Of a stretch of DNA of 64,000 nt, positions 2,257 to 42,800 are shown piece by piece; the stretch's first letter is position 1, and each line of letters begins with the position of its first letter. Both the position numbers and the translations under genes were made by a program. The DNA lies in assembly GCA_037379345.1 (NCBI GenBank), contig CM074514.1:20832001-20896000 (forward strand), in the 5' to 3' direction. Origin of the DNA: Perna viridis. Lineage: Eukaryota. The notes under the pieces are model-generated. The model ran no database searches, had not been told where the DNA came from, and was given only the letters and a program-made list of their open reading frames with translations.

Positions 2257-4440
2257 ATGTTATTTGTGGTACTATCCACTCCCTTGACACTCACTGCTTC
2301 TGAAAGTACGTTGACGGGGACAACGTCTTTAGGTAAGGTTAAGGCTATATCTACATTTGCCGACGACCGGAGTAGTTCTTACAACATCAGGATTTTTCGC
2401 AATATACCCTATTCTAAGGCTCCAGTTGGGAAATTGAGATTTAAACAACCCGTTCCTTTCGGAAATTGGAGTGGAATAAGAGACGGTACTCAGTTTGGAC
2501 CGTCGTACATTCAGCCAAAACCCAATCCTATAATGTCTTCATTACTTCCGAATCATAATCAATCAGAAGATTGTTTGCAATTAAACATTTATTCACCTCT
2601 TAATGCTTCGATTTCTAAAAAGGCTGTGATGATTTGGATACACGGAGGTGATTACACAACTGGACAGGGGATAGTTTATGATGGTGGTTATCTTGCTGGC
2701 ATTGGAGACGTCGTTTTTGTCACAATCAATTACCGCGTTTTTGTCACAATCAATTACCGCCTCAACGTGTTTGGATTTCTAAGTATCAACGATGATTTTT
2801 CGCCCGGCAATTATGGTCTATGGGATCAACAATTGGCATTACGTTGTGTACATGATAATATTAGTGATTACGGGGGTGACAATAAGTTAATTACAATATT
2901 TGGTGAATCAGCTAGGGGATTCAGTGTCGGTCTTCAGGCGTTAAATCCGACAAACAAAGGTTTATTTCAACGCGTGATTGCTTAAAGTGGCGTTGGTAAT
3001 TCCCTTTTAGCGACTTCACCAATTGCAAAATTTGCCACTCAAGTATTTACAAATTTCACTAATTGTCCATCGGATTTGAATCTTGGGACGATGAATTGTC
3101 TCCGTGACAAAACTTCTCAGGAACTATTGGAGGGATTCTTGAGCATGGCAGTTTGGGCCTTGAAAAGACCTGAATTACACATAGAAATAGGTTTTGCGCC
3201 TGTTGTTGACAATCACTTTATGAATAAATCACCTCAAGCTGAAATCAGTAGTAAAGGTCCTGGATTTGAGTTTTACACCTCACTCGACGTAGTAATAGGT
3301 AACTGTGAATCGGAAGGCTCTCTTATTATCAGTGCTCTAAAAATATGAATGCAACAAATAAATTAAAAATGGAATACCTTTTGATTACCTATGCAACAAT
3401 ATCATATCTACATTAGTCTCCGATTACTACAACAACAAAACACATTTAATTCAGCCTATATGTGGCCAGTATAAAACAACCCATCAAAGTATGAGTGCTG
3501 TTAACTTTTATGGCGATGTTTTTTTCCACAGCCCAACTGTTAATAGTCTTGCTTTACATGCAACAAGTAGTAATAAGTCACATTTCCAGTATATGAGCAA
3601 ACGATATTCCATGTTTTCTGTATCCAAACTAAGAGCTAAGTGGTTCATTGGTGCGGGACATGCCTCCGAGTTGCCGTTCCAATTCCCTCTATATGGTTTC
3701 TTCAACATGACCACTGATGATCGTACCAATAGTTTAGTTCTTCTGAAGTACTGGTCTAATTTTGCCAAAACGGGGTATGCATGACAATTTTAAAGCAGCT
3801 AACGTATTAAAATTCCAATTCTTGAATAACATAGCTCGATTAAAGTTGTGATATAAAACTTGCCAACATAAAATTTGAAATAGAAGATTTGACAGAAAAA
3901 ACCGATGTGTGCGAGCATCTAAACTACAAATGTACAATGAGAAAAAAATATAAAAGCAAATTGAAGGCATTCATTCGAAACTCTGTATTAATGATGTATC
4001 ACTTCATATATTTTGTGTGCTTGGATAATCAAGTACTCAAGAATGCTTTAACTATGTACAACTATTGAAAAATAATGAAATATGTGTATTTTTCTTTCAA
4101 TATAAGTTTATTTACTCCATGTTATATTTTTATTTTTTATATTACTTTCAACAGAAACGTTAACGGCGATGGGTTGCCTAACTGGTCCTTAATTGATTTA
4201 TCAAGCCAATCGTTTGTTGTTATTGATGTTAATGTAACAATACAACAACAGCTTTACAAAGAAAGAGGAAATTTCTGGCTTCAAACATTCCCAGGACTTT
4301 TGCATCAGACAACAGCTCTACCTGTTTCATCTGAACTAACCAGTCACACGGAAACATTGACCTCTGAACTTCCAACTATTGTTTCAACGAAGATTTTGGC
4401 GTTTGTTTTTATCATGTTATTTAATATTTTGGAACATTAG
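2257..4440 (+). pseudogene. Carboxylesterase pseudogene, inverted near-identical copy of the minus-strand gene (exons 2257-3774 and 4155-4440)
   Basis: Colinear with the reverse complement of 1-1335. Lesions: CAA->TAA at 2983-2985, two 1-bp deletions in A-runs near 3340 and 3367, 24-bp tandem duplication (VFVTINYR x2), GESAG->GESAR, HGGA->HGGD. His motif GAGHASEL present; phase-2 intron GG|GTATGC...CAG|A joins NFAKTG to NVNGDGLPNW; hydrophobic C-terminus; AATAAA at 4466-4471. Confidence 0.92.
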
Positions 4441-4835
4441 GAATAGTGTGAAAAGTTTTTTTTACAATAAAACAGACTTTTAAATGAAAACAACCTCTCA
4501 GTAAGATAAGGATCTGGGCCATTTTCCCCAGGATTCTGACCACAAGTATGGCTTTCCAACGTTCAAATTTCTGCAATTTTTATTAGTATCTGTCGAAAAA
4601 AAGCTCAGTGTTCGTTGAAACGGAAGCTAAATCAACTCAGATGTAGGAAAACAACAAAAATAAGCAGCAAAATAGATAAAAATGTATTTTTGACATTTTT
4701 GCTCTTATTTGGACACTTTGACTAGAGAATTTCCAAAAAGCACAGTTGCATCCATTACAATGTACCCTCTGTTTACTAGATGCTCCTAGGTGAAAATGTT
4801 GTTTTTTTTAGTTCTTTCATTTGTGGCAACATCAC

Positions 4836-5110
4836 TTAAAAGTAATGAGCAATCCAGAAACAAAGATCAGACATTGAAAACAGACAAACACAACGAGGAA
4901 CATAAAGTAACCAAAATAATACATACAAAATAAAAACCTGTAGGGTAAGCGCTCTCTGCTTTTCATGGAAACACACGCAGAGTTGCTCATAAAAAGTCAA
5001 ATTCAGGGTAAACGAAAAAGGAAAGGAAAACTGTGACGCATTGAACAAATCAGTTTTCATGGTGCGGATGGATACACCGTAACTACATGACGCTGATGGT
5101 TCCAAACTGT
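4836..5110 (-). mobile_element. Penelope-like element 3' fragment
   Basis: Reverse complement matches the RT C-terminus ([14 protein letters not shown]) and 3' tail of the copies at 28920-29583 and 41185-41757, with an internal deletion. Confidence 0.75.
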
Positions 5111-5253
5111 TAAACCGACAATTAAGACGATATCAATTGTAGATAATTTTATCTTATATTCAAAAGACAGACTTAAATGAGCTGCAATATAAAAGAAAGA
5201 AAAATAGAAAACATTGTATTTTAACGTTTTTTGTATTTCAAATGTATTTCCCG

Positions 5254-5420
5254 GAATGTAAATGGACTAGTAGTACCACGTTGGCCACAGTATGATGTCT
5301 ATAACCAGTCCTAAGCAGTATCAACTACAGATATCAGCGTGTACTCAATGCTTTTTCAAAAACAGCGTAGACTTCTGGATGGACGAAGTCGATCCTTTAT
5401 GGAGCCATCGATCATTATAA
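5254..5420 (+). pseudogene. Relic second CCE terminal exon
   Basis: Translates NVNGLVVPRWPQYDVYNQS*AVSTTDISVYSML/FKNSVDFWMDEVDPLWSHRSL*, homologous to terminal exons at 4155 and 14670 (NVNG..LP.WP.Y...LYK...FW); same phase; acceptor reads TTTCCCG|G rather than CAG|G; internal TAA at 5312 and a 1-bp frameshift. Confidence 0.75.
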
Positions 5421-8522: not shown

Positions 8523-9741
8523 ATATTTCATCATGCATTCCGTAATCCCCCACTGTCTTGCCAGTCTCTCGGCAGGAGCTTAAGACCTGCCGCTTTCGGA
8601 ATTTTCGGTTTCACCATGGACAATGATGAGGAGAAAAGGGGAAGTCATAAAGCTCAGAAGTTATATGCTTTAATTTTGGATCGAAGTAACTATTTTTTTG
8701 TCTAAAGAAAAAATGTTGTATGAAAATAAACTGGAAAAAATTCTAGTATAGTTTTATAACAAAGTTGACAGCTTCATATCACATCTCATATTTTTATATT
8801 AACATGTCTTGATAATGACGCTACGTCAAATCTCCCTATTTCGCAAAATTTTAAGAAGGAGGAGGGTCTTCTTATCCTGCGTTTCCGAAGATTAACACCT
8901 ATGCAGGTTACAGACCACCAATTCAACCAATGAGCATTTGGAACGTACGCAAAAATAGTCCTACGCAGAAATTACCCCTGTTCCTCATAGTGCTGTGAAA
9001 AAAGTTCTCATCTTATTTAAAACATTTAAACAGTTTCTGAAAGGAAAAACATTTCTGTACATTTTATAGGTGCATTTTGCTTCTTGTGATGTGAAGCCTA
9101 ATCTCCATAATGATTTTTAAATATACCCCTATCTTGTGAAAACACTGGGATTTCCCATGCTATTTATAGACCCTTCACTTCCGGTGACCAGTACTGCACT
9201 GCAAGTCTGCTAACCCCACATGCCATTCTGAGGATTGTGAGCTGACATATGTAGAATCATGCTGATATATAGTTCTCTGCAGGTTAAAGTTAAGGTCCAG
9301 AAAAGCCATTGAATATTGTGAAATTGGCATAGAAGCCTATGGGAAGTGGAATTAGTGGTTTTTAGCCTGCATTTGGTATCTTCGCTCAAATACACAATAA
9401 ACAGCTTATCATATCTTAATTTCACGTTCAAAAACTATTTTCATTTAAATTTCACATGGATATTCTTACCAACAAAGACTCAAATGGTTCGCGGCCAGGC
9501 CACAATGCTTATATAACCTGACAACCCACAAAGCATTGTTTAATCCCCTCAAAAGCTACCAACCAGGACGCGCCTGCCTTTTTTTTTCATGATTTTAACT
9601 TTTGGTTCTTTGTTTGTACGTAATATTTTGGTTATTTTATCTTTTTAATATGATTATACACAGGTACATAAAAAGAGTTGCCCCTATATACTCAAGTAAC
9701 ATACAAAATAAACTAAAGGTGAAAACGAAACAAGACATACA

Positions 9742-9832
9742 GAGGCCAGAAACTCCCGACTTGGGACAGGCGCAAAAAAGCGGGGTTAAAATACTTTGGT
9801 GTGATCACAACCCTCCCCATATAAAATCTTGC
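9742..9832 (-). ncRNA. Candidate twister ribozyme, circularly permuted (type-P5-like), inside a repeat
   Basis: Minus strand reads GGGGAGGG-TTGTGATCACA-ccaaagtatt-TTAACCCCGC-ttttttgc-GCCTGTCCCAAGTCGGG, matching the twister core UAAC..GC...GCC.GUCCCAAG..GG plus GGAGGG; P2, P4, T1 and T2 can all pair. Confidence 0.6.
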
Positions 9833-10309
9833 CACTGTGGAAAAATATTACACAATTAAACACACCTAAAATTTGCATGAAAATATTCGAAAAGAAGCTG
9901 AACTGCTGACAACATTTAGCACGACAGGACCGCTTGTTACCAATACTTGATTAGACCAGTCATGAAAAATGCAAATACAGATATTTACACATGACCATTG
10001 AGAATTTACATGTACATCCACGCACCTCATGAAGCATGCGCACGGGCAAAGTAATTCATCAGGGACAGTTTTAATATAAATGCTGGTCATTGTTCGCAAT
10101 CTCTTCGGCGCATGTTCAGAAAGGTGTGTTCTGAATATATTGAAAAATTGGAAACTTTACACTATATTAAAGAAAATCAGGCAACAGGATTTTATACACA
10201 CAAAATTGCGTAAAACTTGAACATACATTTTGTATATAAACTTTGCAATATCAAATACATATATGGACATGTTTAATATGTATACATTGTACATATATTG
10301 CACATGATT

Positions 10310-28919: not shown

Positions 28920-29583
28920 AGCACTTTTCTACCACTACTGACTCTGTGAAGTCAGCCTCATATCTTGACCTACACTTAGAGGTCGATGGTAAAGGAAATA
29001 TATTGACCAAACTATACGACAAACGTGACGACTTTTCATTCTGTATTGTCAACTTTCCTTTCATGTGTTGCAACAGCCCTTCAGCACTTGCGTATGGAGT
29101 TTTCATATCAAAACTCATGCGTTATGCCAGAGCTTGCCGTAGCTGCACAACCTTTATATCGCGCAAGAATTCTCACAAATAGGCTTCTGGAGCAGGATTA
29201 TTTTGCTACAATTCATCACTACAGAAGTTTTATGGTCGTCATCATGAACTTGTGGTTCGTTACGGTATATCCATCTGCATCATGAAAACTGATTTTTTCA
29301 ACGTGTCTTAGTTTTCCTTTCCCCTTTCTTCTACCCTAGACTTGACTTTTTATGAGCAACTCGGCGGGTGTTTCTAGAAAAGCAGAGGATGTTACCCCTA
29401 CCGGTGCACCTGGTCCATGCTCCCAGTTTTTAGTGGATACTGACTTGCTCATTTACTTTGTATGTATTATTTTGCTTATTTTATGTTTTTTGTTGTGTGT
29501 GTCTATTTCCCATGTCTGATCTTTGTCCCTGGATTACATTCTTTTGATTTCCGCTAGAATCTTGGTTCCGTTGAATACGCTCT
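28920..29583 (+). mobile_element. 5'-truncated Penelope-like retroelement (RT C-terminus plus 3' tail), probably Naiad-type
   Basis: [77 protein letters not shown] (TAG 29309-29311); PLE-type RT thumb that ends without a following GIY-YIG domain. Confidence 0.85.
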
Positions 29584-39800: not shown

Positions 39801-42800
39801 GATTCTAATGACAAATAAAACACATACACGCTTCATAATTATTGAAAATACCTTAATTAGGTCTGCAACCAGAGACGCTATAAACATGTCATCCAGATTT
39901 AGGTCGCAGTTTTGAAGTATGTCCTGGAACATATAATGAGGGCCATTAGAAATAAATTGTAGACTGAAGCTGCACTCTAGTTATAACATCTCGAAAATGA
40001 TAAATTTCTAAAATGATTTCAAATTCTTGTACAATAGACTACCGAATATGCTTTGAGAGTAACACGAAAATGTAATGACTTCCGTATCTACGTCGTTTGG
40101 TTTGAGTGTGAGATTTCCGTGTAATGCTAAAGTCAAAAACAGTGAGGAAATGAATAGTGACACAATCTGAAGCGATAAGGAAAGAATTAACTTAACACAC
40201 CATTAACTGAACACAACATCTTATGAACGTATTTCGCTCTCTGCAAAATATATCATTAAACTGAAGTTTCTATCTTTTGAGATGGAAATCATTTGCAAGA
40301 AAAATAAAGGAAACAATAATTAGAACGTTAACCAAAACAACACGTACAAAGACATATCACGTGGGGTGAAATAACCCCCGTGTACCCCCACCTCATCCAC
40401 CAAAATATGATTTTCAGGTACCCTTATACCTCCCATTTACGAATCTTTTTGTCGTCAAAAAATAAACTTTTTTTCGCTACTTTCTATACCTCGTTGAGAC
40501 AAAAATCCATTTTTTTAACGTTTTTTTTTATTCTTCGAACTTCTTTCTATAAAACGAAGTAAACTGACATATATGTATATCATCATGTAGCGCAATGTCT
40601 CAGCTTTACAATGGTACCAAGAAACCCCTAGAGTATTTATGCTTCAGTAGAAAATGGCTTACTTGGTATTTTCGGTTTAGTATTATCACAATCTATACTT
40701 TTTGTGTTCTTTTGATGAATTTTGGCAATTTTCGTAGCAAGAATTTATCCCCCCAAAAAAGGGCCAAAAATGGGATTTTCGGTTTTTCCGTAAAATTCAC
40801 ATAAATTCGACTCTACAAGTTATTGCTTTACTAAAATGTCTCAAATTTGGTTTCATTCGATAGATAATTTAATTGTCTACATAAATAAACAACGAAAAGC
40901 TAATTTAAAAAAAAATAAAAATATTACCCCTATCCCCAGAAAACTGGTCTCAGTATCAAACAGAATTATCATTCACAGAATACTGATACTGTAAAGCTCA
41001 AATTTAAGGCATTCATACTTAAGATAGTTATGTACCCAACATATCTGATCAATTCTGGCGCTTAGATGATTTTTGGGGGGTACAATTACTGTAAAATTGA
41101 AAAAAAATTCACAACTTCTGAATTTCTTCTATATCACTCGATGTTTCATTCTTTTTTTCTTTAGAAAACAAGCTTTTGTTTAAATCGATGGTAAAGGAAA
41201 ACTATTGACCGAACTTAACGACAAACGTGATGACTTTTCATTCAGAATTGTCAACTCTACTTTCATCTGTGGCAACATCCCTTCAGCACCTGCGTATGGA
41301 GTGTTCATATCACAACTCATACGTTATTTTTTTGTATCGCACTAGAACTCTAACAAAAAGGCTTCTGGAACAGGGTTGCTACAAGATTGAAGTCATCACT
41401 ACAGAAGTTGTCTGGTCGTCATCATGAACTCGTGGATCGTTATGGTGTATCCATCTGCACCATGAAAACTGATTTATTCAACGGGTCATAGTTTTCTTTT
41501 CCTCGTTTGTCTACCCCGGATTTGGCTTTTTATGAGCAACTCGGCGGGTGTTTCTAGAAAAGCAGAGGACGCTTACCCTACCGGTGCACCTGGTCCATGC
41601 TCCCAGTTTTTAGTGGAGTCCGAGTTGCTCATTTGCTTTTGTTACTTTGTATGTATGATTTTAGTTACTGTATGTCTGTTTTCCATGTCTGGTCTTTGTC
41701 CCTGGATTACATTCTTTTGATTACCGCTATAACCTTGGTTCCCTTGATTACTCTTTGTGTAATACGCTTAACTAAAATAGTGTCTACGCTTCCGGATAGG
41801 CCAAAGTGATAAATATTTGAACTTTTCCAAGTCAAGTAAGGTGGAAAAATGCCACCCCAACCCTTGAAAAAAATATCTCAATATGAATGTAAATGTCTGG
41901 CATATAAATAGTGTACGATAGACATGTTGGGTACTATTGTTTTATATATTGGTGTATCCAACAGATCTTTTTTTTTTATTTCAGGCGCGTATTTTTCAGT
42001 TTCAATGTGAAGATAATGAGTTTTTCATAAAAAGGGGCATTTTCGGAATTTCATATTTTCTTCCATTTCACCTGTAATTGGCAATTTTTATGTCGATGAT
42101 ATTGATGTATTCAATATATCTTCTCGTTTCAGGCACGGCACGTATTTTTTAGTTTCAATGAAATGAAATGAGAATATATGTTGGACACATCAATATATAA
42201 AACAAAAGTACCCACAATGTCTATAGTATACCATTTATAACAGTTTTGAAAATTCTTTCTTGAAAAACGGAAAAATCGAAAACTCCATTTTTTCTATATA
42301 TTCTGACCCAAGAAGTATAAATTGTGATAATACTAAACCGAAAATACCAAAAAGCCATTTTGACTGAAGCATTAATACTCTAGGGGTTTTCTATGGAAAA
42401 ACATGTCAATTTAAGCAATTTTTTGGTGGGTAGGGGTCCGATGTTTTTTTTCTCATTTTACCCAAAAACAAAAAAAAAAAGTTTTACCGCAATTTTCTTG
42501 GTAACATTGTAAAGCTGAGACATTGGGCTACAAATCTCAATTTTTATAGTTTGTTCACACATGCTGTCCTAGGAAAGCTTAGACGCTGAAACAATTGCGC
42601 AACAAAAATATTGGCTTTTAGAACCAGTGGGGTACAAATATACACTTACACTGAAAAAGAGTCCGAGAATATTCTTTGACGACAAAATGATTCGGTAATG
42701 AGATGTATAAAGATACCTAAAAATCACCATTAAGTTGATGAGTGGGGAGGGGGGTGCATGGTGGACCCACCACCTCATGGACTAAAACAAAAGTAAATAA

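Follow-up and report, generated by a model that had tools for sequence, protein, structure and literature searches.

The window analysed here, a stretch of 64,000 nucleotides from the genome of Perna viridis (assembly GCA_037379345.1, contig CM074514.1, positions 20,832,001 to 20,896,000), holds on its minus strand the worn remains of a putative twister module, which lie inside a truncated piece of a Naiad-type retroelement tail. A sequence-only reading of the window had listed the motifs of a circularly permuted twister core, and all of them were found in the window letters. They are GGG-GAGGG at minus-strand positions 9818-9811, UU followed by a perfect 10-nt palindrome TGTGATCACA (RNA form UGUGAUCACA) at 9809-9800, U^AA at 9788/9787-9786, CCCC-GC at 9785-9780, and CCTG-TCCCAAGT-CGGG, preceded by U6-GCG, at 9770-9755. 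Palindrome b, the P5 helix and a P3 hairpin whose 5' strand is deleted in the window copy come in addition to that list. The predicted features are given below, one per line.

9647..9871, minus strand: internal piece of a Naiad-type retroelement tail, 225 bp (consensus positions 177-405, 92% identity; both the 5' and the 3' end truncated)
9838-9739, minus strand: putative decayed type-P5 twister module as a whole (from motifs and family comparison)
9827..9838, minus strand: P5 5' strand ACAG-U-GGCAAGA (GGCCAGA in the consensus; one C>A mismatch here)
9819..9826, minus strand: P5-P2 junction UUUUAUAU (UUUUAAA in the consensus)
9816..9818, minus strand: P2 3' strand GGG (GGGG in the consensus; one G lost here)
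9811..9815, minus strand: L1 3' strand GAGGG (pseudoknot T1 pairs its final three G with the CCC in L4)
9800..9809, minus strand: palindrome a UGUGAUCACA (core GUGAUCAC, the 8-nt block that is palindromic across the other lineages too)
9789..9796, minus strand: palindrome b AAGUAUUU (consensus AAGUACUU; self-complementary via G.U pairs; adjoins the cleavage-site U)
9786..9788, minus strand: L1 5' strand U^AA (predicted scissile bond 9788/9787, after the twister domain table in PMC8501958)
9782..9785, minus strand: P2 5' strand CCCC (from the letters and family comparison)
9780..9781, minus strand: L2 GC (pseudoknot T2 with GU of L4)
9771..9779, minus strand: P3 hairpin remnant UUUUUUGCG (5' strand CGCA deleted in the window copy)
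9755..9770, minus strand: P4 and L4, CCUG-UCCCAAGU-CGGG (CAGG in the consensus; one U.G wobble here)
9739..9750, minus strand: P5 3' strand UCUGGCC-U-CUGU (pairs with the P5 5' strand)

The P5 helix of the window copy joins GGCAAGA (9833-9827) to UCUGGCC (9750-9744) with one mismatch, followed by an ACAG/CUGU extension; in the consensus the pairing is perfect. Set against the consensus, the window copy lacks one G in P2 and the AAA in the junction; gone, too, are the P3 5' strand, a pair in P5 and, in P4, a Watson-Crick pair. A scan of the window with Rfam models at the gathering score returned no match, neither to twister nor to hammerhead, and a search of 271 nt around the copy gave no twister match in Rfam even at E<=10. 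The folding energy of the 91-nt stretch 9742-9832 is no better than that of shuffled sequences (z -0.27). Overall, we regard the window copy as a decayed, truncated relic that is itself almost certainly inactive.

Other traces of related elements lie in the same window. Three pieces from the C-terminal part of the reverse transcriptase (RT) belong to a younger Naiad family and were found at 28934-29308 (plus strand), 41184-41488 (plus strand) and 43094-42990 (minus strand), with 66-88% protein identity to L081. The tail of this family lacks the twister module and carries, about 40 nt after the stop, a branched hairpin with a 13-bp closing stem AUGAGCAACUCGG...CCGAGUUGCUCAU at 41532-41634, with a copy at about 29350-29455. 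The hairpin is stable, with a folding energy of -41 kcal/mol (z -2.7), and no Rfam model matches it.

A family resembling the type-P5 twister

Read 5' to 3', the consensus of the family's thousands of copies runs in its first half (ACAG-U-)GGCCAGA, UUUUAAA, GGGG, GAGGG, UU, GUGAUCAC, GCCA, AAGUACUU, U^AA, and in its second half CCCC, GC, CGCA-U5-UGCG, CCUG-UCCCAAGU-CAGG, AAUU, UCUGGCC(-U-CUGU). It is more twister-like by far than the window copy, adding a P3 of 4 bp and a P5 of 7+4 bp, and its domains follow the order in the published twister table (PMC8501958) after a circular permutation that opens the chain at P5. No intact copy was found in the Perna viridis genome, in which a 38-nt core word is kept by four copies and the 5' half by 29, and stops are present in all RT copies seen. 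The ancestral module would have begun with a long P5 strand, a short junction, the P2 3' strand GGGG, GAGGG, UU and palindrome a. Three to four nucleotides would have separated this from palindrome b, U^AA, the P2 5' strand CCCC and R-C, and the module would have ended with the P3 hairpin, CCUG-UCCCAAGU-CAGG (P4/L4), a short junction and the P5 3' strand.

The twister elements recur across the six lineages described below, of which the window's family is lineage A. The L1 loop, with N^AA on its 5' side and GAGGG on its 3' side in the window, reads U/C^AA and GA[G/U/A]GG in all lineages. P2 is GGGG/CCCC in the consensus and in four other lineages, GGG/CCC in lineage C and 3 bp long in the window copy. 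P4 is closed by the twister loop UCCCAAGC, giving CCUG-UCCNAAGY-CAGG in every lineage, with CGGG (a U.G wobble) in the window copy. The chain is opened at P5, the helix being formed by the module flanks in all six lineages. The canonical P1 hairpin is not formed: the linker of lineage A folds at -0.2 kcal/mol, and no half-to-half complementarity is conserved across lineages. The A-rich L2 3' strand of the canonical twister is not retained by all lineages and is reduced to GU alone in lineage C, while L4 ends in U in five lineages instead of the usual C. At the family level, the comparison thus bears out the type-P5 core of the sequence-only reading, with P2, P4, T1, T2, GAGGG, U^AA and the open P5 all conserved, and supports the family as a candidate near-complete type-P5 twister with a long P5, P2, P3, P4, GAGGG, N^AA and UCCCAAGY. 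We are confident that it represents a genuine, selected, twister-derived module of a retroelement.

The Rfam check that had been suggested for the module yielded a twister hit at a sub-threshold score, and not the absence of any hit that would have counted against the twister reading. Twister-P5 (RF02684) aligns end to end to the better copies: for L058 it is the top of 4,227 Rfam models (aligned 1-58/58; 23.0 bits; E 0.0046 for that stretch), and for L094 it is again the top model, with a full-length alignment and 18.3 bits. These values, like every covariance-model score for the module, lie below the Rfam gathering threshold of 37.6 bits, and the window copy itself has no match. In the alignments of L058 and L094, P1 is bypassed via a local end and the P3 insertion is penalised; the scores stay below the threshold because P1 is absent. 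The gathering threshold overlooks this module variant completely. A genome-wide Twister-P5 scan, in which 79 of about 8,400 candidates were scored, did not pick up the module family; the best score elsewhere in the genome among those 79 was 22.1 bits. A type-P1 alignment of L089 (24.3 bits) is taken as an artefact, as it uses GUUGG for GAGGG though a perfect GGG-GAGGG lies upstream.

The genome also contains many type-P1 twister-like sequences, with at least 56 matches among the 61 candidates scored; the best reaches 57.5 bits against an Rfam cut-off of 67.2 (E 7e-10 genome-wide). Examples lie at C2:53654043-53654103, C10:24851628-24851687 and L031:1516-1572. Their core is canonical, CCGG-UCCCAAGC-CCGG ... 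GGAG-GAGGG; this is a separate, putatively twister-bearing repeat family.

A Naiad-type host element

Querying the 723-Mb genome with 201 nt returned more than 3,800 candidate matches, the best at 86-90% identity, and other copies extend beyond both ends of the window piece 9871-9647. Copies in the twister sense share a sharp 3' end and show a staircase of variable 5' truncation in coverage; the element's 3' end, ...CCTATTCTCGTT, adjoins (TA)n. The 225-bp unit was also considered as a SINE or MITE, a reading that we rejected given that copies run on at both ends, the staircase is LINE-like and there is no tRNA-like Rfam match. A decayed RT gene with YLDD lies upstream of the module. In 9 of the 12 RT-centred loci the module is found 900-1,000 nt downstream of YLDD, and about 280 nt separate it from the element's 3' terminus. 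The ORF of the window's family stops about 230 aa past YLDD without an endonuclease (EN) motif.

According to PMC8557442 (Craig et al. 2021), Naiads are recognized by an N-terminal GIY-YIG domain, the lack of a C-terminal one, a CxC motif and a change from DKG to DKA. In lineage C, one frame runs from the C-terminal half of a GIY-YIG nuclease through a KR-rich block, SCTCS (CxC) and PADKAAN (DKA) to the RT, after which the ORF ends without a C-terminal EN. In the Perna viridis genome, the younger Naiad family encodes CxC, DKA and, at the N-terminus, a GIY-YIG domain (Pfam 22.8 bits, cut-off 22.6). The CxC and DKA motifs read SCTCS and PADKAAN in L089 and DCSCK and PADKAQN in L078-L083; decayed forms in the window's family are PDCIG and PADKT/PANKA. 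The N-terminus of the window's family is too decayed to read for GIY-YIG, and its placement among Naiads draws on homology, on what remains of DKA, on the point where the ORF ends, on (TA)n and on partial tandems. Truncation at the 5' end, partial tandems and a target bias for (TA)n are traits of the Naiad clade, and all three are seen here. Such tandems are typical for Penelope-like elements (PMC8557442). The one in L093 consists of two head-to-tail, 5'-truncated repeats of 1,347 nt (2589-3934 and 3992-5333; 97.9% identity), each with one twister module, so that the modules lie 1.4 kb apart. A hammerhead search of the six lineage loci found none at E<=10.

These data support as host an old and very abundant Naiad-type Penelope-like retroelement, in which the window's family is placed with its N-terminus unreadable. 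The sequence-only reading had proposed a repeat-borne, retroelement-linked twister: the repeat and its link to an RT stand, and the host appears to be a Penelope-like element of the Naiad type instead of a classic non-LTR one.

Several further features of these elements may be recorded here. Just after the ORF stop of lineage B there is a SECIS-like match (L088:811-875; SECIS_1, 23.2 bits, cut-off 35), and in lineage C an in-frame TGA occupies a conserved Cys position in the RT N-terminal region (L089:1296); both fit the selenoprotein-coding clam Naiads of PMC8557442. Near the 3' end of the element, downstream of the twister, the last ~150 nt hold a conserved block GGGGCC...UUGAAGAC...GGGGUUGUUGUCUCUUUGACAU (consensus of L002-L030). 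This block is also present in L088, L089, L092, L093 and L095, L092 keeping it despite the absence of the twister, and it may be the RT recognition end. Second module copies with 77-79% identity lie 420-650 nt downstream on the same strand in two loci (L007:1119-1218 and L024:2185-2295), one of them without GAGGG.

Covariation and palindromes in six lineages

A decayed piece of the C-terminus had earlier served as query for a word search among proteins, which gave one match, without a tail. Lineages outside the window's family came from a search of profile A1 (four decayed C-terminal ORF pieces) against 1.84 billion proteins, followed by a word search with one match. They stem from contigs of five public metagenome assemblies, some copies being themselves decayed, and together with the window's family make six lineages.

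Lineage A: the window's family, Perna viridis genome
Lineage B: L088, and also L059 in the window's own genome
Lineage C: L089, a Tara Oceans scaffold
Lineage D: L094
Lineage E: L093, two copies
Lineage F: L095

The module is absent from the related tail L092. Core identity between lineages is 68-87%, against 52-62% in the 100-nt flanks. The G-A of GAGGG, N^AA, CCUG/CAGG and the UCC-AAG of L4 are invariant in the six lineages, while the elements listed next vary.

Third pair of T1 (L4 CCC/L1 GGG): C-G in A-D, A-U in E (both copies), U-A in F; 100% of cells paired
First pair of T2 (L2/L4): G.U in A, A-U in B-E, G-C in F; 100% of cells paired
P3: CGCA/UGCG in A, B, C and E, CGCAUA/UAUGCG in D, CACAU/AUGUG in F
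P5: a different sequence in each lineage, with flank duplexes of -12 to -24 kcal/mol

Shuffled sequences do as well as the P5 flanks in at most 1 of 300 trials for A, B (L088), C, D and E, in 11 of 300 for B (L059) and in 20 of 300 for F. In P3, the change from CGCA/UGCG to CACA/UGUG is explicable by CpG decay alone. Covariation was counted in a MAFFT alignment (A2) of eight natural sequences, in which 92.4% of cells are paired, against 26-50% with slid partners. Eight pairs of this alignment show changes on both sides, a count matched by 7 of 500 shuffles, and the covariation score is 0.236 against 0.128 after shuffling (none of 500 shuffles reaches 0.236). Lineages C and F are one column off register in palindrome a of this alignment, and C also in P2, so that pairing is undercounted; the palindromes were analysed in hand-set registers. 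A lack of covariation in P2, P4 and T1 had been named as an outcome that would refute the twister reading, and this is not what is seen: T1 covaries, with its C-G, A-U and U-A pairs, and P2 and P4 are invariant. Compensatory changes also affect P5, P3 and T2.

In place of P1, the interval from GAGGG to N^AA measures 19-22 nt in every lineage and is without a stable fold (-0.2 kcal/mol, measured for A). It contains two 8-nt self-complementary blocks per lineage, whose positions relative to GAGGG and N^AA shift by no more than 1 nt.

Lineage A: block a GUGAUCAC, block b AAGUACUU
Lineage B: block a GGGAUCCC, block b AACUAGUU
Lineage C: block a GAGCGCUC, block b AACCGGUU
Lineages D and F: block a UGGAUCCA, block b AACUAGUU
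Lineage E: block a (U)GGGCCC(U), block b AACUGGUU

The claim that canonical P1 is missing and that a palindrome takes its place was thereby confirmed and extended to two palindromes, both self-complementary in six lineages with different sequences. Paired substitutions affect three of the four pairs in block a and two of the four in block b, and only 1 of 48 cells is unpaired across the six lineages. Block b of lineage E is self-complementary only via G.U pairs, which marks it as a feature of RNA and not of DNA. In all lineages block b abuts the scissile nucleotide, which is the position of the P1 5' strand. An irregular intramolecular P1 (G-C, U-A and G.U after two U.U) was tried as well and rejected, since lineage A alone can form it, the pairing being broken in B and C.

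Since a perfect palindrome of 8 nt is incapable of forming a hairpin, its pairing must join two copies, and the retention of palindromes of different sequence in six lineages makes pairing in trans probable. Taken together, the lack of an intramolecular P1 and the covarying palindromes indicate that the helix at the cleavage site is probably built in trans. In RNAcofold the a:a duplex alone reaches -13 to -17 kcal/mol and the linker forms helix a only; the program is unable to score a:a and b:b jointly because the topology is crossed.

Possible cleavage in trans and its precedents

Our overall reading is that the window preserves a decayed type-P5 twister relic in a Naiad-type tail, whose ancestor was probably cleaved at U^AA, by way of a helix that was itself probably built in trans. 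We judge that the module of intact copies would likely be self-cleaving. The module RNA would be cut at U^AA through the same chemistry as in other twisters. Two modules, located either on two RNAs or on both tails of one partial-tandem transcript, would pair via blocks a and b, which would lead to the cut at N^AA. Only multimeric Penelope-like transcripts would then be cut, a role that has also been proposed for minimal hammerheads with a palindrome in other Penelope-like elements. We are more tentative about whether cleavage depends on the pairing of two module copies, a step that we consider quite possible and still short of probable. The same reserve applies to the wider proposal that a Naiad subclade may use a twister with two palindromes in place of P1, active only when two copies pair and convergent with the dimeric minimal hammerheads.

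One might instead suppose a monomeric twister without P1, in which the linker of 20-22 nt just closes the permuted chain and the palindromes serve some other role, such as RNA dimerisation for template switching, the formation of partial tandems during retrotransposition, or co-packaging. It is true that P1-less twisters still cleave, albeit inefficiently (PMC8501958), that partial tandems are typical of these elements (L093; PMC8557442), and that the covariation of the palindromes proves self-pairing and not a catalytic role. Yet palindrome b adjoins the scissile U in every lineage, exactly at the site of the P1 5' strand, and the placement of both blocks is constant to within 1 nt. The nearest precedent, the palindromic helix III of Penelope-like hammerheads, couples pairing with catalysis (PMC4209133). 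With these points in mind we find the monomeric explanation rather unlikely, but it is the alternative that we take most seriously.

A twister-derived fold that had lost cleavage and was kept as structured tail RNA, for example as an RT/EN recognition site, would be in keeping with the sub-threshold covariance-model scores, the absence of P1 and some deviant canonical loop nucleotides. It would also agree with the other conserved 3'-terminal block downstream of the module and with the reads, which carry no cleavage signature. In one raw RNA-seq run mapped on the consensus-like copy L018 we counted about 2,100 reads on both strands, whose depth tracks the DNA copy profile. A look for RNA 5' ends at the cleavage site had been suggested as a check; in this run on decayed copies no position showed an excess of read ends, and the dip in depth at the site recurs in the DNA contigs and thus comes from read mapping. 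With every copy here decayed, the RNA-seq data neither support nor refute ancestral activity. The same copy shows a tandem duplication variant of 39 nt (L018:1471-1509), with a joint stepping back 39 nt; it occurs in both RNA and DNA runs and is therefore a subfamily polymorphism and not an RNA event. What makes a non-cleaving fold improbable to us is that the catalytic residues (N^AA, the G-A of GAGGG and the CCNAAG of L4) are invariant while the helices covary, a pattern to be expected of an active site and not of a mere scaffold. Least credible of all is a chance look-alike within an ordinary repeat. The missing Rfam match and ordinary folding energy of the window copy, together with sub-threshold Twister-P5 matches of about 22 bits elsewhere in the genome, might speak for it. 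Such a view hardly accommodates a consensus much closer to the twister than the window copy is, compensatory changes across six lineages that include both pseudoknots, and a core conserved well above its flanks.

If the favoured reading, a twister at work in the tail of these Naiads, is true, it touches on the place of ribozymes in Penelope-like elements generally. PMC8557442 describes Naiads, the most abundant Penelope-like elements in many invertebrates, as being without the canonical hammerhead and the ribozyme as possibly dispensable; a twister is nowhere mentioned in that paper. The presence of a twister at the tail position of the hammerhead in at least one Naiad subclade would argue against such dispensability, and a self-cleaving step would then be a general need of Penelope-like elements, met by different ribozyme classes. 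Our literature search on twisters in Penelope-like elements found no paper linking the two. The module may be a twister variant with two palindromes for P1 in a type of host element new for twisters. The six natural variants already hold disrupting and compensating changes.

Among known systems, the type-P5 twister (RF02684, clan CL00120) shares with the module the order of the P2 3' strand, GAGGG, (P1), N^AA, the P2 5' strand, GC, (P3) and P4, as well as the UCCCAAG loop on P4, the opening at P5, both pseudoknots and a full-length model alignment. The module differs from it in having two palindromes for the P1 hairpin, in scoring 18-23 bits against 37.6, in an L4 that mostly ends in U, matching A or G in L2, and in its host, the tail of an animal retroelement. 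In Schistosoma mansoni, T-variant twisters sit at the 5' end of the RTE element Perere-3 (PMC8501958). These are likewise retroelement-borne with a weak or absent P1; they tolerate C^AA besides U^AA and have the GAGGG-UU context in common with the module. However, the Perere-3 twisters are of type P1 and lie at the 5' boundary of the element, where the target-site duplication supplies the P1 5' strand (PMC8501958), whereas the module is of type P5, carries palindromes and belongs to a Penelope-like element, whose 3' end is about 280 nt away.

The closest parallel in logic is offered by the hammerheads of Penelope-like elements. The canonical hammerhead of these elements resides in the pseudo-LTR tail, and its helix III is a short palindrome, for which reason activity as a dimer has been proposed for it (PMC4209133; PMC6765202). 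The minimal hammerheads of Penelope-like pseudo-LTRs (PMC4209133) resemble the module in host class, in a tail that forms pseudo-LTRs, in partial tandems and in the replacement of a core-adjacent helix by a short palindrome, with activity as a dimer as the proposed logic. The module, known here from its sequence, departs from them in belonging to the twister class and in having two palindromes, not one.
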